Sequence record: OR805292.1
DNA: 64,000 nucleotides
Reading direction: 5' to 3' (one strand)
Within the stretch, counting starts at the first letter, position 1; each line of letters starts with the position of its first letter. The position numbers and the translations under genes were made by a program. Below the pieces are notes generated by a model, which was given only the letters and a program-made list of their open reading frames with translations, was not told where the DNA came from and did no database searches. This document shows, one piece after another, positions 1,628 to 40,348 of this stretch.

Positions 1628-3118
1628 ATGAAACTATTTGAAGTGTTTACTTTATATGAAGATAAAGCAGAACTGATTGTGAAAAATCAAGGACCCAACC
1701 TCCTTACTGCTGCTAAAAATTATGGATCGAATATTCGTACGGCTGAAGAAATAATGAATGTTCTTAAGCGTGCAGATCCTACATCTAATCAGAAATATTT
1801 GCAATGGATTACTAATAGATTTATTGCAGGTGAATTTAGATTAGAAGATACTAATAGAATAAGGGCAGAACTTATATCATTCGAAAGATATAAACGTGTT
1901 TTACCGAAAAAAGATATAAATCAGTATAAAACACTAGGAGAATTGTATGCAGTAATTGACCCATTAAATGACGCAGCAACAGGCAACGATCTGATTGGTG
2001 TATCTAATAAACAAGTTAAAAAGCATGCATATAATGCCAAACGCCAAGAATTAATTTCGTCTGGTCAAGCAGATGTAATTTATAAAGGCCAAGAAGGAAT
2101 GCTAGTTAATCCCAAAACAGAAGAAGCAGCAATATTCTTCGGTCAAGGAACTAGGTGGTGTACCGCAGCAACTAGTAGTGATAATATGTTTAGTCACTAC
2201 CATAGTCAGGGACCGTTATATACTTGGTTAGGTTCGGATGGATTCAAAGCACAATTCCATTTAGAAACTAATCAATGGATGGATTCAAAAGACGAGCCTT
2301 TAGACAACGCTCAGATGTCTAAGCTATTGTTAATTCCTATAATTAAAAAATTGTACGACGACGGTATAATTAAATCTGAGAAATCACTTGTCGGCGATCG
2401 TGGCGGCTTCGATGACGAATATGATAATAGACTATCGGATGACTATTATTTCGACATGTGGGCTGATCGAAAATACCGTATCAAACGACATATTGAGAAA
2501 CACGGCATGTCTGAGTATTTAATAGATACACTTTCTGTTAAAGATCCTTTATTACCGTTGTTTGTTTTACCAGAACACTCAAAATACCCTGCGTCGAAAT
2601 CACTCGATGATTATTTTTTAAAATTATCCAAAATAGAACCGCTCGACCAATATAAAGAGATAAATGGGTATTTTGAGAGTGATATGTTACTTCGATTAAC
2701 TAGATACCTTGAAGATTCTACAGGGTCTCATTCTAAATCTTTAGATGATGCTGGATTTAATTTTGTTCGTCGATTACTGGACATAGGCGGAAAGGATTTT
2801 GATTTAATAATATCGAACTATCTAAAACATGTAGCTGAGAATTCTAAAACAAAACAATACCTTCTGTCTAATCTTCCGTTAGCTGTTGAGATTGCTAATT
2901 CGATCGAATGGCCAGAACTTATGACAGCAATTGAGCATGAGCTTAGCAATGCTAAAACACCAAAAGAAGAGAACGATGCAATAAAACTAGGCAGTGATTT
3001 AATGTTTAAATCTAATAGCCTGCCTGTATCTAAATGGTTTATTAATTTACTTAAAACTACAGATGCAGGTAAACGATACTTATCATCATTACCTGAGTAT
3101 GACAACACAAAACAATAA
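1628..3118 (+). CDS. Hypothetical protein with FGQGTRWCTA (PcfJ-like) domain, putative head-packaged protein
   Basis: Long ORF; start moved to ATG 1628 (MKLFEVFTLYE leader) after the late promoter; G-T-x-W-C domain common in jumbo phages. Confidence 0.6.
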   Translation: MKLFEVFTLYEDKAELIVKNQGPNLLTAAKNYGSNIRTAEEIMNVLKRADPTSNQKYLQWITNRFIAGEFRLEDTNRIRAELISFERYKRVLPKKDINQYKTLGELYAVIDPLNDAATGNDLIGVSNKQVKKHAYNAKRQELISSGQADVIYKGQEGMLVNPKTEEAAIFFGQGTRWCTAATSSDNMFSHYHSQGPLYTWLGSDGFKAQFHLETNQWMDSKDEPLDNAQMSKLLLIPIIKKLYDDGIIKSEKSLVGDRGGFDDEYDNRLSDDYYFDMWADRKYRIKRHIEKHGMSEYLIDTLSVKDPLLPLFVLPEHSKYPASKSLDDYFLKLSKIEPLDQYKEINGYFESDMLLRLTRYLEDSTGSHSKSLDDAGFNFVRRLLDIGGKDFDLIISNYLKHVAENSKTKQYLLSNLPLAVEIANSIEWPELMTAIEHELSNAKTPKEENDAIKLGSDLMFKSNSLPVSKWFINLLKTTDAGKRYLSSLPEYDNTKQ

Positions 3119-3146
3119 ATACAATTAAAGTTTTGAGGTAAGAATT

Positions 3147-4637
3147 TTGATTAATTATAACAGAACTGCTAAAAAAATATTTTCTGTATTAAAAGGGCAC
3201 AGCTATCGGGTTAAAATGTATGACCTAACAGGCAATGAAGTGATAGACCCGGAAAAAGCTCGTCGATTTTATGTTCAATATCCGAACATGATGATAACAC
3301 TAGATGAAGACACTGGTGAAATTCGTATGAGCAAAAACAATAATATTTCTTTAACTGAATACGAAAGTACATTAGTTCAGTTAAAGAACATAGCAGTTCA
3401 TTACATGCTAAATTTTACCTTGAAAGACTTCGGGAGAGAAATAACACCGAGAGATTTTGCATACCAAGCAAAAGTTAAAAAGGAAAAAGAAATGTCTAAC
3501 GGATCTGTATCTGAATCTATATCTCCTCTAGTTGGTTCTAGAAAAACAAGTTATCAAACAATAGAAAATGTTAAAATACATGTAAAGCATAAGACACATG
3601 TCGACGAAGAGATTAGGGGAGCTCGTTCTAGAAATATTTCTGCAATTTTTATAGAACACTCGGGAGAAAGGTTTCGTTTTCCTCACAATAACTTAGTTGG
3701 TGCCCGCGCCATGGCAAGACATATACAGCAAGGCGGTAATCAATACGATTCGATTGGTTCTTATATAATAGAAAGCTGTGCTAACTATACTAAGTTAAGA
3801 GAATTTATGAGATATATTCGTTCTAACAATCTTATAACAGAAGATAGCAACGATGTTATTGCTAATATTAAGGAAAGTATAGATAGTATAGCTACAGATT
3901 TAAGACGTCTATCTGGTGTAAATACCTACGATATAGTAAAATCTAGGATCGAAGAAACAGAAGAAACAGAATGCGATGTATCTGATGTAGATAAGTTTAA
4001 GGATATGTTTACTATTCGTAAGTTTGATGATAAGTTTACTGATGTTCTTCCTATAGTGAGTAAACTCGTTAAGGAAAAACAATCATATTTAAAGAAAATA
4101 GAAGAAGCAGTTTCTAAACAAATTTATATAGAGTCTATGCCTATTTTAGAAACTAATGCTATAATATATGAAAATCCTAATATTAAGTTAGGACATAGCT
4201 TACAAGAACTTAGTTCTAGAATATTAGAAAACACATTATTAGCTAATTATATTTCGTCAATGGGATCTAAGCTAATAAAAGAAAATACTTTAAATAAATT
4301 CGAATGTTCTATAATTAAATCATTTTTTGAAAACGTTAGTGTTAAAAAAGCAAATACTAATCAAACTAACGGGTTATTTGCAGAATCGATTAACGAATTT
4401 GGGATAAATATTCCTGACTTCCCGGATAATAATCCCTTTAATAAAAATAAAGACAACAAATACAGTAATTCAGATTTAGATAAACATGCATCTGATCAAA
4501 AAGTAGATGCAAATGACACTGTCTCTAAAATTGATTTTATTATAAGCAATAGTCACGGAAGGTATAATGACAGAGAAAAATTACTAAAATTACCAGATGA
4601 TGTTATTAACAGAATATATTCTAAAATTGCTAAATAA
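3147..4637 (+). CDS. Conserved jumbo-phage protein, probably structural
   Basis: 496-aa ORF, TTG start with GAGG SD, TAAATA at 3116-3121. Confidence 0.6.
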   Translation: MINYNRTAKKIFSVLKGHSYRVKMYDLTGNEVIDPEKARRFYVQYPNMMITLDEDTGEIRMSKNNNISLTEYESTLVQLKNIAVHYMLNFTLKDFGREITPRDFAYQAKVKKEKEMSNGSVSESISPLVGSRKTSYQTIENVKIHVKHKTHVDEEIRGARSRNISAIFIEHSGERFRFPHNNLVGARAMARHIQQGGNQYDSIGSYIIESCANYTKLREFMRYIRSNNLITEDSNDVIANIKESIDSIATDLRRLSGVNTYDIVKSRIEETEETECDVSDVDKFKDMFTIRKFDDKFTDVLPIVSKLVKEKQSYLKKIEEAVSKQIYIESMPILETNAIIYENPNIKLGHSLQELSSRILENTLLANYISSMGSKLIKENTLNKFECSIIKSFFENVSVKKANTNQTNGLFAESINEFGINIPDFPDNNPFNKNKDNKYSNSDLDKHASDQKVDANDTVSKIDFIISNSHGRYNDREKLLKLPDDVINRIYSKIAK

Positions 4638-4718
4638 AATTATTATAAAGATCATTGAAATGGATTCGAAATAAAATTAATTCTGTATACTTTGCATATT
4701 ACACTAAAAAATAAATGG

Positions 4719-4747
4719 TTGACAAATAGATAACTGCATTATATAAT
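4719..4747 (+). promoter_or_regulatory. Sigma70 promoter of ssb
   Basis: TTGACA (4719-4724), 17 nt, TATAAT (4742-4747): perfect consensus. Confidence 0.9.
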
Positions 4748-4760
4748 TACACCATAACTT

Positions 4761-4801
4761 AGTTTTGCAGCTAACCCGAGCAAAACTGTATTAAAAGGGT
4801 T
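4761..4801 (+). promoter_or_regulatory. H-type pseudoknot in the ssb leader (gene 32-type autoregulatory element)
   Basis: S1 AGTTTTGC 4761-4768 / GCAAAACT 4780-4787; S2 AACCC 4773-4777 / GGGTT 4797-4801; then an A-rich tract to ATG 4838. Confidence 0.6.
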
Positions 4802-4837
4802 TAGGATAAAATAAAAAAATATTAAGGATAATTCATT

Positions 4838-5824
4838 ATGGCTTCTCTTGCTGAACTACGTCAAAAATTAAAAGATCAAGAAACAAAACGTGGCACAAAA
4901 TCATCTGGCAGTGCAGATAAAAGTAATTTCCCATTCTGGGACATGAATGAAAACGACAGTGCTACTGTAAGATTTCTTCCTGATGCAAACACTGATAATA
5001 CCTTTTTCTGGGTAGAAAAACAACAAATTAAAATTCCATTTAGTGGCATTGTAGGTATGAATAGTAAACCTACAGTTGTTACTGTACCGTGTGTAGAAAT
5101 GTGGGGGGAATCTTGCCCTATTCATCAAGAAATCCGTCCGTGGTTTAAAGATCCTTCGTTAGAGAAATTAGCGCGTACTTATTGGAAGAAACGTTCTTAT
5201 ATTTTCCAAGGACTTGTTCGTAAGTCACCCCTTGTAGAACAAGAACTACCGGAGAATCCTATTCGCAAATTCACATTCGGAAGTCAGATTTTTAATCTAG
5301 TTAAATCGTCTCTATTAGACCCCGAAATGGAAAACATTCCCACTGATTATTTAAATGGTACTGATTTCCAGATAACTAAATTAATGAAGGGCCAATATGC
5401 CGATTACGCTACATCTAAATGGGCAAGGAAAGAATCTTCGTTAACTGAAGAAGAATTCCAAGCAATCCAAACATATGGTCTGTATGATTTAAGTAAATTT
5501 TTACCTGCTAAACCTGATGCAGAAGCATTAGCTGCTATATTCGAGATGTTCGAAGAATCAGTAGAAGGTAAAGAATATGATCCGCAGCGTTGGGGGAAAT
5601 ACTATCGCCCTTACGGGGTTGAAGTTCCTACTAATACTTCTGTAAGTGTACCTGTATCTAAACCAGAACCTAAGACTACGGTATCTAGTTCTTCAGTTAT
5701 AGAAGACGATAACGATGATCTTCCTTGGGAAGATACTACTAAACCCGTAGAGCCTGTCAAATCTGCTTCTAATGCGCAAGATATAATTGCGCTCATCCGC
5801 GCCCGCCAAAACAGCGGCAACTAA
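4838..5824 (+). CDS. ssb: Single-stranded DNA-binding protein (T4 gp32-like)
   Basis: TVRFLPD, PC...CP Zn ligands, YWKKRSY, DY..SKW motifs, acidic DDNDDLPW tail, position before uvsX. Confidence 0.9.
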   Translation: MASLAELRQKLKDQETKRGTKSSGSADKSNFPFWDMNENDSATVRFLPDANTDNTFFWVEKQQIKIPFSGIVGMNSKPTVVTVPCVEMWGESCPIHQEIRPWFKDPSLEKLARTYWKKRSYIFQGLVRKSPLVEQELPENPIRKFTFGSQIFNLVKSSLLDPEMENIPTDYLNGTDFQITKLMKGQYADYATSKWARKESSLTEEEFQAIQTYGLYDLSKFLPAKPDAEALAAIFEMFEESVEGKEYDPQRWGKYYRPYGVEVPTNTSVSVPVSKPEPKTTVSSSSVIEDDNDDLPWEDTTKPVEPVKSASNAQDIIALIRARQNSGN

Positions 5825-5829
5825 ATAGG

Positions 5830-5858
5830 GAGAGGGGATCGCTGATCCCCTCTCTTTA
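5830..5858 (+). terminator. Intrinsic terminator after ssb
   Basis: GAGAGGGGATC-gct-GATCCCCTCTC followed by TTT. Confidence 0.75.
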
Positions 5859-5931
5859 ATATAACCTAAAATAGCCAAAAAGTACAACTACAATGTTGGA
5901 AGGACGGCAGTATTATAAAAAAGGACATTTT

Positions 5932-6177
5932 ATGACAAAACCATTCGATATTTCTAAATTTAGAAAAGATATTACTAAAAGTATCACTGGCATTAGTACA
6001 GGATTTAATGACCCAACTATTTGGATTAGTACCGGCAACTATACTCTTAATTATCTCATTAGTAGCGACTTTAATAAAGGCGTACCTATGGGTAAAGTAA
6101 CTATGTTTGCTGGCGAGTCGGGTTGTTTGCCTGAAACTGCTAAAGTGAAAATTAGACTATCTAAGAAGCAATCTTAA
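5932..6177 (+). CDS. uvsX: UvsX/RecA N-terminal extein (64 aa) fused to 17-aa split-intein N-fragment
   Basis: ISTGNYTLNYLIS...GKVTMFAGESG, then CLPETAKVKIRLSKKQS-stop (Cys1 at 6124); AAGGA SD before ATG 5932. Confidence 0.92.
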   Translation: MTKPFDISKFRKDITKSITGISTGFNDPTIWISTGNYTLNYLISSDFNKGVPMGKVTMFAGESGCLPETAKVKIRLSKKQS

Positions 6178-6186
6178 CTGTCCAGT

Positions 6187-6226
6187 GTCTCCGTCGAGGA
6201 TAAATACTTTTATCTAAAACGGAGAC
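6187..6226 (+). promoter_or_regulatory. RBS-sequestering hairpin with embedded late promoter, upstream of the homing endonuclease
   Basis: GTCTCCGT 6187-6194 pairs with ACGGAGAC 6219-6226 (covers the GGAGA SD); inner stem 6198-6204/6209-6215; TAAATA at 6201-6206. Confidence 0.75.
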
Positions 6227-6229
6227 TTT

Positions 6230-7663
6230 ATGGGAAATTACAATGTTCTTTCTACAAAAAACTTTAAGAAGCTATGTAATGAGTTAAACATAGTAACGAT
6301 ATCAGAAAAGTACATTTCTGATATACGTAAGATAGAAGATTCTGCTAAGAGCAAAGTGGATTCTGCATCTCAGCGTATGATATTAACTATGATAACTGTG
6401 AAAGTTCCCGACTTATATGATGCATATAACAGATACTATCAGCTCAGAACAGATGGTATTAGTACAAAAACTCAAGACAGTATTTCTTATATTTTTGGAA
6501 AAGACTTCCTCGAATCTGTTAATTTACTAATCAGTAATAGATATAAAACTGCATTCCGTAAAGGAATGACAGTGGAAGAGGCATTTATAACACGTAATAA
6601 AGACTTTTCCAATAATGGTGTGTATTATAACCAGATGACTGATAAGCAAAAGAAACGTTTATCATTATTGCTTAGTGTGTATACACCAGAAAGGTTGGAG
6701 TTTTATAAAAAGACAATTTCGTTTTTTATTAAGTTAGATTTGACTAATTATGCAGGAAGAATGAAAAGACTGATGAAACTGGGATCTAGTACGTCTTTAT
6801 ATGCTAGCGTATTACGGTATGGTAAATCTGTCGGAAAAAGCACACATTCATCTGTATCTGCGGTAAAGAGAAACTATTTGCCTACTTCGATACAATATTG
6901 GATGGCAAAGGGGTTTGATGAAGATACTGCATTAGTGAAGATAAACGAACATCAACAGAAAGCAAGTGCCATGTCTTCCAAAAAACTAAAAGGCACTAGC
7001 GAATACTCTGTTCGATCAGTTGCATATTGGATTAAAAACGGGTATAGCGAAGAAGAGGCAAAAGGGAAAGTATCTAATATACAGAATACTTGGAAAAATG
7101 TATCTCAAGAAGAGCGTGATCGAAGAATAGAATCGTGGATGACTACAATGAGTCTTAAAACAGACGAGGAGAAATCTTTGATAAACCTTAAAAAAACTCA
7201 CAGCCCGGAAGGGATAATGGCAAGGACAAATTGCGATTATGATATTGCATTTAAGCAAAGCGTTGATTTTTTTAAGAAACGAAATAATTCTTCTAAAGTA
7301 TCTCAAGAACTATTTTGGGGAATTGCCGAGGATATCGATACCGATGGAGTTTACTTTTCTGAACTAAACTACGAATACCCTGTTATGGGGAAAATAGTAG
7401 ATTTCTATGATTCTAAAAGCAAAACAGTAATCGAATTTTATGGAAACTTTTGGCATGCAGATAGTACATATACTGATGACACACTGATATATGGAAAAAC
7501 TGCTAAAGAAATAAGAGAATCGGACATTTACAGAGAAACGTTAATTAGATCATCTGATTTGGTTAGTGATTTTATAGTAGTTTGGGAAAAGGACTTTAGG
7601 AAGAATCCGAAAGAAACAATTAAAAATTTAGTTAATATTTTAAATAATAAAAGGAAATTTTAA
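6230..7663 (+). CDS. Free-standing Vsr-like (PD-(D/E)XK, DUF559-type) homing endonuclease inside the fractured uvsX
   Basis: C-terminal VDFY...VIEFYGNFWH...D...VVWE motif, YW..G..E..A repeats, located between the split-intein halves. Confidence 0.8.
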   Translation: MGNYNVLSTKNFKKLCNELNIVTISEKYISDIRKIEDSAKSKVDSASQRMILTMITVKVPDLYDAYNRYYQLRTDGISTKTQDSISYIFGKDFLESVNLLISNRYKTAFRKGMTVEEAFITRNKDFSNNGVYYNQMTDKQKKRLSLLLSVYTPERLEFYKKTISFFIKLDLTNYAGRMKRLMKLGSSTSLYASVLRYGKSVGKSTHSSVSAVKRNYLPTSIQYWMAKGFDEDTALVKINEHQQKASAMSSKKLKGTSEYSVRSVAYWIKNGYSEEEAKGKVSNIQNTWKNVSQEERDRRIESWMTTMSLKTDEEKSLINLKKTHSPEGIMARTNCDYDIAFKQSVDFFKKRNNSSKVSQELFWGIAEDIDTDGVYFSELNYEYPVMGKIVDFYDSKSKTVIEFYGNFWHADSTYTDDTLIYGKTAKEIRESDIYRETLIRSSDLVSDFIVVWEKDFRKNPKETIKNLVNILNNKRKF

Positions 7664-7666
7664 TAA

Positions 7667-8938
7667 ATGGAATACATCGAAAAGGAAGTAACAGTTAGTG
7701 AACTGAAGTCTCTCTACAGTAGTAATGAATACGAAATTGAGTTAGACACACCAGATGGCTGGCAAAAACTGGGATCTTGGTTCGATAAAGGCCCTCTTAG
7801 TATGGTGACGGTAGAAACGCAGGATGGGTTAGTTACTAGATGTGCAGTAAACCATATGATCGAAGTGGTAGACGGATCGGAAACTTTTTGGACACTTGCA
7901 AAAGACTTGTACGAAGGCCAACAAGTGCTTACTGTAAACGGTGTCTCAACAATTAGTTCTGTAACTGAAAGTGGCATCGAAGAATGTTTCGATTTCGAAA
8001 TACTCCACGAAAATCATCGTTACTATGGTGATGGATTCTCTTCTCACAATAGTGGCAAATCGTATATAGTATCAGGAAACATTGTAAAAGATGCACAAGA
8101 AAAGGGAATTTTTGTTGTATTACTTGATTCAGAAAATGCACTCGACGAATCTTGGTTACATGCACTAGGTGTTGACACCGGACCGGAAAAAATGTTACGC
8201 ATCTCTGTATCGATGATAGATGATGTAGCAAAAATTATTAGTGATTTTGTTAAAGATTACAAGACTAATTATGCCGAACTACCTAACAATGATCGACCAA
8301 AGGTGCTTTTTGTTATTGACTCGCTCGGAATGTTATTGACACCAACGGAAACTGCACAATTTCAAAATGGTGATATGAAAGGAGATATGGGCAGGAAAGC
8401 AAAACAATTAAAAGCATTGATTTCTAACTGTACAAATATGTTCGGCAACTTAGACATAGGCCTTGTTTGTACTAACCATACATATGCATCTCAAGATTTA
8501 TTTCAGCCTGACGCTGTAATTTCGGGTGGCAGCGGCGCAGTCTATGCGGCGTCAATTGTAGTGGCAATGCAAAAGTTAAAGTTAAAAGAAGACGAAGCAG
8601 GTAATAAAATTTCTGAAGTAGCTGGCATTCGTGCAGTATGTAAAGTTGTGAAATCTCGATATGCAAAGCCGTTTGAGACAGTAAAAGTAAATATTCCATA
8701 TGATACAGGTATGAGTCCAATATCGGGTCTATTTGACTTGTTTGAAAAAACAGGTAAACTTGTAAAACAAGGCAATAGATATAAGTACATAACCAAGGAT
8801 GGTACTGAAATGCTGTATTATAGGAAAGAATGGAATGATTACGATAAACTAAAAGTAATTATGAATGAATTTACAGACGAAGACCTAGGCAATGTCGTAG
8901 AAGTGGAAGAGGGTCATTTAGAAGAGTTCGATGAATAA
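7667..8938 (+). CDS. uvsX: 128-aa split-intein C-fragment fused to UvsX/RecA C-terminal extein (295 aa)
   Basis: Block B CAVNH, block F CFDFEI, terminal HN (8045-8050) followed by Ser; then SGKS, LLDSENA, VIDSLG, TNHTY, ISGGSG RecA motifs. Confidence 0.93.
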   Translation: MEYIEKEVTVSELKSLYSSNEYEIELDTPDGWQKLGSWFDKGPLSMVTVETQDGLVTRCAVNHMIEVVDGSETFWTLAKDLYEGQQVLTVNGVSTISSVTESGIEECFDFEILHENHRYYGDGFSSHNSGKSYIVSGNIVKDAQEKGIFVVLLDSENALDESWLHALGVDTGPEKMLRISVSMIDDVAKIISDFVKDYKTNYAELPNNDRPKVLFVIDSLGMLLTPTETAQFQNGDMKGDMGRKAKQLKALISNCTNMFGNLDIGLVCTNHTYASQDLFQPDAVISGGSGAVYAASIVVAMQKLKLKEDEAGNKISEVAGIRAVCKVVKSRYAKPFETVKVNIPYDTGMSPISGLFDLFEKTGKLVKQGNRYKYITKDGTEMLYYRKEWNDYDKLKVIMNEFTDEDLGNVVEVEEGHLEEFDE

Positions 8939-25897: not shown

Positions 25898-25969
25898 TTG
25901 TTCTTAGTGTGTAGAAAAAACTTTACATATGCGATAAATACCTATATAATATGTGTATAGGTAATAGCA

Positions 25970-26434
25970 ATGACACAAAAAATTCATGGTACTAGTAGTG
26001 CCCAACAAAATCTAACTGCCGATGTACCCTATTTTATAGTATATGCGCAATCCGATAAGGCATATACTGATCCCGAAAACGCAGAAGGGATAAACATCTT
26101 AGTAACAAATAATATACATGATATAAGCCAAAAGAATTTCGAAATACTTCTTCAAAGTATAGGTCTCAGAGCTATGCCAGTTATAATGAATAATCCTGTT
26201 CCTGTTGCTAATTTAGCTGCATATGGTGCCCCTACATTAATTGGTGAAGGATTTGTATGGAAATTTGCATGTGAAATGCCGGAAGTGTTTACTAATTATA
26301 ACCCATATGGTACACCTGGAACAACTGGGTTATTAGTAGACGAACTAGATGGTATTATATTGCCGTCGGGTACCATTATAAGAACATATGGGTCGGGTTT
26401 AAACATAGAATTTGTGAGATCTTCATTATTATGA
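25970..26434 (+). CDS. Putative virion structural protein (N-terminus similar to the 25549 gene)
   Basis: TAAATA 25935-25940; MTQKIHG...NLT N-terminus. Confidence 0.65.
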   Translation: MTQKIHGTSSAQQNLTADVPYFIVYAQSDKAYTDPENAEGINILVTNNIHDISQKNFEILLQSIGLRAMPVIMNNPVPVANLAAYGAPTLIGEGFVWKFACEMPEVFTNYNPYGTPGTTGLLVDELDGIILPSGTIIRTYGSGLNIEFVRSSLL

Positions 26435-39559: not shown

Positions 39560-39588
39560 TTGACACGGAAGAAAACGTATAGTATACT
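39560..39588 (+). promoter_or_regulatory. Sigma70 promoter of the folE operon
   Basis: TTGACA, 17 nt, TATACT. Confidence 0.85.
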
Positions 39589-39658
39589 ACACAAATAATT
39601 AAAGCAAAGTGCAGGCGGCACTTTGCTTATCAAACTAAAATGATTTCAGGAGGAAATC

Positions 39659-40348
39659 GTGTCGTTAAACAAAACTAAAACTGATGCCGAACTAGGCAAA
39701 AAAGTACAGCAATATTTAATCCAACAAGGAGTAGAAACTCCTATGCAAGAGCAAACTCTAAACGTTAAAGAGCGGATAGATAAAATTGAATCTCATTTTG
39801 TTGAAATTATGAATGCACTTGCGTTGGATCTTTCCGACGATAGTCTTGCAGAAACGCCTCGTCGAGTAGCAAAAATGTATGTATCTGAGATATTTTATGG
39901 ATTGGATTATGAGGCATTTCCTAAATGCACCACTATTGAAAATAAATTTAATGCAAATGAAATGGTCTTAGTAAAAGATATAGATTTATATTCTCAGTGC
40001 GAACATCATATTTTACCAATAATTTCTGGATCATCTTCCGGTCGAGGCGGAATATCAGTTGCTTATATTCCTAAAAATAAAGTAATAGGTCTCTCTAAAT
40101 TAAATAGAGTAGCAGAATTTTTCTGCAAGCGACCTCAAGTTCAAGAACGACTCACATTACAAATATTTCATGCATTACGGTATATTCTGGAAACAGACGA
40201 TGTTGCTGTTTTAATTAACGGAAGGCATCTGTGTGTGGAATCTAGGGGTGTAGAAGATACAAGTTCGAGTACGATAACTTCTAAATTAAGTGGTGCATTT
40301 AGCAACGATCCTGCCACCCGTGCAGAATTTATGTCTCTTGTAAAATAA
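39659..40348 (+). CDS. folE: GTP cyclohydrolase I
   Basis: ETPRRVAKMY, SQCEHH, GLSKL.R, RPQVQERLT, HLCVESRG. Confidence 0.96.
   Translation: MSLNKTKTDAELGKKVQQYLIQQGVETPMQEQTLNVKERIDKIESHFVEIMNALALDLSDDSLAETPRRVAKMYVSEIFYGLDYEAFPKCTTIENKFNANEMVLVKDIDLYSQCEHHILPIISGSSSGRGGISVAYIPKNKVIGLSKLNRVAEFFCKRPQVQERLTLQIFHALRYILETDDVAVLINGRHLCVESRGVEDTSSSTITSKLSGAFSNDPATRAEFMSLVK

Follow-up and report, generated by a model that had tools for sequence, protein, structure and literature searches.

The stretch of DNA analyzed here (the window) comprises bases 1–64 000 of the record of Pseudomonas phage Cassandra, OR805292.1, so that record positions and window coordinates coincide. In nucleotide comparison, the 1.5 kb around the leader of the ssb gene are 100% identical to Cassandra and 98.3–99.2% identical to ten further records of PA5oct-like jumbo phages; Cassandra itself is a PA5oct-like jumbo phage of the genus Wroclawvirus, family Arenbergviridae. 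The product of ssb matches the Pfam family gp32 (PF08804, E = 1.7e-9); its BLASTP alignment with T4 gp32 covers 237 amino acids at 26% identity (E = 1e-8) and takes in the internal K-(K/R)-(K/R)-(S/T) motif as well as the C-P-x-(C/H) portion of the zinc site. RaK2, 121Q, GAP32, CBB, XbC2, Atu_ph07 and other phages share with Cassandra the gene order structural protein, SSB, UvsX. The Cassandra genome has a G+C content of 33%, so that A/U-rich leaders are the norm. The features of the ssb locus are collected in Table 1.

Table 1. Features of the ssb locus of phage Cassandra (window coordinates).
Feature	Position	Strand	Basis
Consensus sigma70 promoter: -35 TTGACA 4719–4724, 17-nt spacer, -10 TATAAT 4742–4747	4719–4747	+	12/12 match
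Predicted transcription start, ~7 nt past the -10	~4754	+	promoter geometry
S1 hairpin: 8 Watson-Crick pairs 4761–4768/4780–4787 plus U4760.G4788; 11-nt loop 4769–4779	4760–4788	+	RNAfold MFE, centroid
S2 5' strand, in the S1 loop: core AACCC 4773–4777, optional C4771-U4772	4771–4777	+	complementarity
S2 3' strand: core GGGUU 4797–4801, U4802 bulged, optional A4803-G4804	4797–4804	+	complementarity
Unstructured A/U-rich tract holding the ribosome-binding site, 36 nt	4802–4837	+	composition, folding
ssb, gp32-family single-strand DNA-binding protein, 328 aa	4838–5824	+	Pfam, BLASTP, annotated SSB in OR805292.1
G+C-rich 11-bp hairpin just past the ssb stop codon, where the ssb transcript probably ends	5830–5854	+	folding, depth drop

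Two further observations concern the neighboring genes. Downstream of ssb, uvsX is present in two pieces (5893–6177 and 7667–8938) around a 477-codon ORF, and the first piece ends with ...AGESGC, as is typical where an intein interrupts the P-loop. Upstream, the virion structural gene of phage Paride (L002) carries a 78-bp in-frame insertion, at about window position 4471, compared with the other Wroclawviruses.

The ssb promoter is the only 12/12 match to the sigma70 consensus within 3000–8000. The + strand of the genome is enriched in near-consensus sigma70 sites (37 vs 13 in the control), and the article text on PA5oct reports dependence on the host RNA polymerase, with TTGAC/TATAATA promoters (PMC7318152); outside its supplements, where the promoter table sits, that article makes no statement on ssb. 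The 84-nt ssb leader is long for this genome, in which most promoters lie 14–25 nt from the start codon. Transcription of the locus is represented by Logan contigs from a single study of 2020, which contributed four RNA-seq runs. The summed word depth of these contigs, which neither fix transcript ends nor rank expression, is 0–960 upstream of 4747 and, in two runs, ~1e5 in the bin 4748–4811 and ~5e5 through ssb, the corresponding depths in a third run being 2e3 and 1.7e4. The contig depth goes up 100–500 fold at 4748–4811, and it drops after the bin 5772–5835; one low-depth contig terminates at 4767. Such boundaries would fit a monocistronic, highly abundant ssb RNA running from the consensus promoter to the hairpin past the stop codon.

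Apart from the sigma70 promoter, 42 relatives carry a T4-late-like box, ATAAATA, 2–6 nt upstream of the TTGAC of their ssb promoters. In this place (4708–4718), Cassandra has AATAAATGG, and its leader contains GATAAAATA (4805–4813), a near-copy of the GATAAATA box at 6199. The boxes near the ssb promoter may represent a tandem arrangement of early and late promoters.

Two helices are predicted in the leader, which compete with each other unless they coexist in a pseudoknot. The loop of the S1 hairpin has a single G+C-rich run, AACCC, and this run is perfectly complementary, over 5 bp, to the segment that contains the only GGG elsewhere in the leader; RNA.duplexfold lengthens the resulting S2 helix to 4771–4777/4797–4804 (−8.0 kcal/mol). 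In the pseudoknot-free ensemble, S1 has a pair probability of 0.59 and the CCC/GGG pairing of S2 a probability of 0.35, with 4775–4777 being the main partner of G4797–G4799. This ensemble is dominated by two helices, S1 and S2, which are mutually compatible only as a knot; the loops of such a knot (L1 = 4, L2 = 2, L3 = 8–9) would be sterically ordinary for the H-type. A rough Dirks-Pierce-type sum, which is our own approximation, places the knot at −11.0 kcal/mol vs −8.5 kcal/mol for the S1 hairpin alone, a gap of 2.5 kcal/mol that makes the knot thermodynamically plausible. The tract that follows is 86% A+U and 56% A, with a mean unpaired probability of 0.66, and no stable fold was found in it. 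It contains UAAA/UUAA elements, an A-run at about 4813–4819, a direct repeat of AGGATAA (4803–4809 and 4825–4831) and the Shine-Dalgarno (SD) sequence AAGGA (4824–4828), 9 nt ahead of the ATG at 4838. An Rfam search of the leader at E-values up to 10 returned only noise, and a search of the entire 64-kb window returned nothing at the gathering score.

A sequence-only reading of this DNA had described a pseudoknot a few nucleotides past the predicted start of a perfect sigma70 promoter, followed by ~36 nt of unstructured A/U-rich sequence up to the ATG of ssb, in a jumbo phage that is distant from T4 and has a different leader sequence. At the level of sequence, this description holds throughout: S1, S2, the tract and the ATG are located where that reading had placed them, the first of the candidate elements, S1, starts 6–7 nt into the predicted transcript, and the leader shares no sequence with T4.

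The system for comparison is T4 gene 32. The T4 gp32 represses translation of its own mRNA by nucleating on a pseudoknot in the leader and spreading over an AU-rich tract, so that the ribosome-binding site is covered. Furthermore, 5'-terminal stem-loops stabilize bacterial and phage mRNAs, as is the case for the ompA 5' UTR, and the T4 gene 32 leader is itself a determinant of stability. The T4 operator consists of a knot of ~28 nt, which starts 67 nt upstream of the AUG in an mRNA whose 5' end, at −71, is generated by RNase E, and of an unstructured A+U-rich region exceeding 40 nt, which contains UUAAA/UAAA repeats and extends over the ribosome-binding site; RB49 lacks the gene 32 knot (PMC535899, PMC3014915). 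The layout of the Cassandra leader is similar. Both leaders precede a gene for a gp32-family SSB; the knot occupies −67 to −40 in T4, and the candidate knot −78 to −37 in Cassandra; the structured element lies a few nucleotides downstream of the 5' end in T4 (−71) and of the predicted 5' end in Cassandra (−84); the unstructured A/U-rich RNA amounts to 39 nt in T4 and to a slightly shorter 36 nt in Cassandra; and UAAA/UUAA elements along with an AAGGA SD are present in both.

The construction of the two RNAs is different. The T4 knot is compact and coaxially stacked, with ~28 nt, an S1 of 4–5 bp, an L1 of 1 nt, an S2 of 7 bp and no junction, whereas the Cassandra candidate has an S1 of 8–9 bp, an S2 of 5(–7) bp, an L1 of 4 nt, a 2-nt junction and an L3 of 8–9 nt, spanning 41–44 nt. 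Given the longer S1, the 4-nt L1 and the 2-nt junction, a continuous coaxial stack is not expected in the Cassandra knot. There is no sequence similarity between the Cassandra leader and those of T4, T2, T6 and RB69, and the Cassandra 5' end is predicted to come from the promoter rather than from RNase E cleavage. Because of the different geometry and the lack of shared sequence, the Cassandra leader does not belong to the T-even RNA family and is, at most, an analogue of the T-even operator. The proposal of the sequence-only reading that the two phages share the same control architecture stands for the layout (position of the candidate knot, tract and AAGGA) but neither for the compact T4-type geometry nor for conservation in distant relatives, which is addressed below. 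The Cassandra leader also resembles the stabilizing 5' stem-loops of the ompA 5' UTR and of the T4 gene 32 leader in that a highly abundant transcript carries a stable hairpin near its 5' end, but differs from them in that the loop is large, contains G+C and has a downstream complement, and in that the predicted 5' tail is ~6 nt long.

The reading that we tentatively favor is that the ssb leader serves as a gp32-type autogenous translational operator that also stabilizes the mRNA. Under this scheme, ssb would be transcribed alone from the consensus sigma70 promoter, yielding a very abundant mRNA, the first ~50 nt of which would fold into a stable hairpin; the large loop of the hairpin would pair with GGGUU located 9 nt downstream, to form the H-type pseudoknot, and the next 36 nt, with the SD, would stay A/U-rich and single-stranded. 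When free SSB exceeds the available ssDNA, the protein would load cooperatively on the unstructured tract, which is bounded by the 5' structured element, a possible nucleation site for such loading, and SSB on the tract would cover the ribosome-binding site. The 5' structure may additionally protect the mRNA end. On the analogy with T4, the pseudoknot would form in vivo, SSB would bind, and repression would ensue. More specific versions of this scheme are harder to sustain: the strict claim of the sequence-only reading, that SSB autorepression is nucleated by the knot, appears unlikely, and equal doubt attaches to the version in which a non-homologous knot of a different geometry evolved independently, nucleates cooperative binding of SSB and mediates self-repression.

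The evidence that the leader structure is more than a chance occurrence is mixed. A purpose-written finder was used that searches for two contiguous helices in the H-type geometry and scores them in kcal/mol; applied to T4 as a positive control, it finds the canonical gene 32 knot at −67 (S1 UGCC/GGUA, L1 = A, S2 GCUAUGA/UCAUAGC) with p = 0.01. The score of the Cassandra leader, −14.0 kcal/mol, is reached in none of the 3000 mononucleotide shuffles, in 3 of the 3000 dinucleotide shuffles (P ~0.001) and in 17 of the 3044 natural 84-nt tiles of the window (0.56%). Taken alone, S2 has P of 0.015–0.026 against shuffles and 0.09 against natural 50-mers, and the z-scores of the nested minimum free energy are not significant (+0.54 for 4754–4860 and −0.52 for 4754–4804). 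The window contains roughly one perfect 8-bp hairpin per kb. The case for non-randomness therefore comes from the knot arrangement in an a priori meaningful place rather than from raw stability.

The main competing explanation is that the leader is a plain expression cassette in which S1, as a 5'-terminal stem-loop, shields a very abundant mRNA from 5'-end-dependent decay, the A-rich leader is a strong initiation region, and S2 is coincidental, with no feedback from SSB. Such a cassette, with a hairpin that acts simply as a stabilizer, is nearly as likely as the gene-32-type operator. Nested folding that is no better than in shuffles and an S2 that, by itself, reaches only P of 0.02–0.09 speak for it, and the extreme abundance of the ssb transcript and the usual A/U-richness of leaders in a 33% G+C genome fit it as well. 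It accounts poorly for the rarity of the combined knot score (0.1% of the shuffles, 0.56% of the natural tiles) and for the match between the sole G+C-rich run of the loop and the sole other GGG of the leader. Besides, an 11-nt loop is a poor design for a stabilizer, and the predicted 6-nt single-stranded 5' tail exceeds what is usual for protective 5' stem-loops.

The cassette explanation gains from a second promoter in the window. Within 39560–39660, a sigma70-type promoter (39560, TTGACA/17/TATACT) precedes the GTP cyclohydrolase I/QueD gene cluster, and its leader, of 64 nt, has an 11-bp hairpin (39602–39628) that, like S1, starts at about +8; S1 may, accordingly, be a generic element, which weakens the operator reading. 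Comparable hairpins are found behind only a handful of 30 near-consensus sites. A preQ1 or other riboswitch in the GTP cyclohydrolase leader was considered and rejected, given that there is no Rfam signal.

The comparison of close relatives is uninformative with regard to the RNA structure. From the -35 to the ATG, there is not a single substitution among nine Wroclawviruses, the only variation being the length of the A-run (6–8 A), and hence there is no covariation signal to count. This invariance was rejected as a sign of constraint on the leader because it is not leader-specific: the substitution-free block in these genomes extends over 341 nt (4700–5040), reaching from the promoter through the leader into ssb as far as codon 67, synonymous sites included. 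The DNA flanking the block varies at 3–5% of the columns. A recombination sweep or an RNA-level constraint could be the cause of the invariant block. No SSB more than ~60% identical to that of Cassandra was found in IMG/VR, JGI/ENA metagenomes or GTDB genomes.

Among the more distant relatives, with SSB 40–60% identical to that of Cassandra, the knot score is not enriched in the 80 leaders analyzed: the median p is 0.36, and 11% of the leaders have p ≤0.05, most of these cases straddling the promoter. The ssb leaders of RaK2/GAP32/121Q-like phages and of uncultured jumbo phages resemble that of Cassandra in the gene order, in the sigma70-type promoter and in being long and A-rich with a hairpin at the 5' end; they differ from it in having WGGCW repeats or an SD in a hairpin loop and no pseudoknot signal, where Cassandra has the candidate knot. 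Judging from these sequences, the pseudoknot is not conserved in the leaders that precede the genes of distant SSB relatives, and the recurrence of A-rich leaders that have a 5' hairpin but no knot also speaks for a plain cassette. In the Mimasvirus/Eneladusvirus ssb leaders (GAP32, CBB, XbC2, fHe-Yen9-04; L015–L019, ~487–502), a small hairpin, TTGAT-AAGGAA-ATCAA, with the SD in its loop, is conserved.

Sequence elements of other kinds are prominent in the leaders of uncultured relatives. In 137 distinct uncultured relatives (L020–L180), the SD-like WGGCW occurs in 2–4 copies in the last ~90 nt before the ssb ATG, with the subclade forms ACATGGCA, YAGGCAAC and AGGCTAATA. The density of this motif is 3.0 per 100 nt in the leader vs 0.56 downstream (5.4-fold), at least two copies are present in 132 of the 137 leaders, the final copy coincides with the SD or with the ATGGCA start, and often one copy lies just before the -10. 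These repeats, which are absent from the Cassandra ssb leader, look like a sequence-specific operator. In one uncultured subclade (alignment A3: L021:942–975, L031:940–973, L035, L046, L051, L084, L108 and L170), the leader has a 5' hairpin with an 8-bp stem that is 100% paired and shows compensatory changes in 5 of the 8 pairs. Its 12-nt loop (CTAAACACAGAA / AAAAACCCAGAC) is conserved in sequence, resembles the Cassandra loop and has no downstream complement, which suggests recognition of the loop by a factor. Homology of S1 to this hairpin was examined with a covariance model, R1, built from the eight members of the subclade, and rejected: R1 misses the Cassandra hairpin on the + strand and gives only a match on the - strand (10.3 bits, E = 6.4). 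The best R1 match in the window (17.6 bits, E = 0.11), at 26064–26094, is a 5-bp hairpin whose loop, GAAAACGCAGAA, resembles the subclade loop; it sits downstream of a promoter-like site at 25922.

A different RNA role can also be considered for the Cassandra structure. Either the knot or its two helices, as alternative hairpins, might modulate ribosome loading, or else another phage or host protein might bind the large loop; in a variant of this explanation, the upstream SD-like AGGA (4803–4806) would be hidden or exposed as a standby or decoy site. We regard such a role as improbable. Its appeal lies in the extended S2, which pairs A4803-G4804 of the first AGGATAA repeat, in the SD-like repeats that are the hallmark of the relatives' ssb leaders, and in the covarying subclade stem with its unpartnered conserved loop; nevertheless, Cassandra lacks the WGGCW repeats, its hairpin is missed by the subclade covariance model on the + strand, and no candidate binding protein is known.

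In several uncultured relatives (L062, L064, L065, L075 and L045-type), the -10 of the ssb promoter lies between the arms of an inverted repeat, such as TTGCACAT...ATGTGCAA in the case of TATAAT or AAGCGCA...TGCGCTT in the case of TATACT. Such repeats may act as DNA operators, or they may form promoter-overlapping hairpins. A DNA-level function can also be envisaged for S1, a perfect 8-bp inverted repeat just past the start site: the repeat, at +7 to +33, could be an operator at which a dimeric repressor binds to shut off the early promoter. The inverted repeats that flank the -10 boxes of the relatives lend this explanation some substance, but the half-sites in Cassandra are 19 bp apart, center to center, with a non-symmetric spacer, which is atypical, and the S2 complementarity would be left unexplained. 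A repeated DNA operator was rejected because the palindrome occurs only once in the window, even when 3 mismatches are allowed. On balance, a role of the palindrome as DNA appears very improbable.

In summary, the operator reading is favored by the homology of ssb to gene 32 combined with a leader layout close to that of T4, by the rare knot score from a finder that recovers the T4 knot, by the dominance of S1 and S2 and the estimate that puts the knot below the hairpin, by a loop that is unusually large for a mere stabilizer hairpin, by the length of the leader, by the rise of contig depth at 4748–4811 and its fall after 5835, and by the variable length of the A-run, which fits an unstructured spacer. 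It is weakened by the lack of covariation in the nine genomes and of knot enrichment in the 80 relatives' leaders, by the non-significant nested z-scores and the modest P-value of S2 alone, and by a geometry that is not T-even-like, with no Rfam match.

Should the knot fail to form, what remains is an ordinary cassette for strong expression. If the knot does form and SSB represses translation through it, autoregulation of the gp32 type would be a recurrent and convergent answer to the problem of matching the supply of SSB with the demand for ssDNA, rather than a peculiarity of T-even phages. The gene 32 knot has been described as possibly the sole viral pseudoknot for translational autoregulation (review PMC3014915), and the Cassandra leader would then be the second, convergent example of this device. 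How a sequence-independent ssDNA binder selects its own message is a question left open in the work on T4 and RB69. The PA5oct-like phages can be cultured and are studied for therapy, which makes a test practical, and the Cassandra leader would provide a second, differently built RNA with which this question could be asked.
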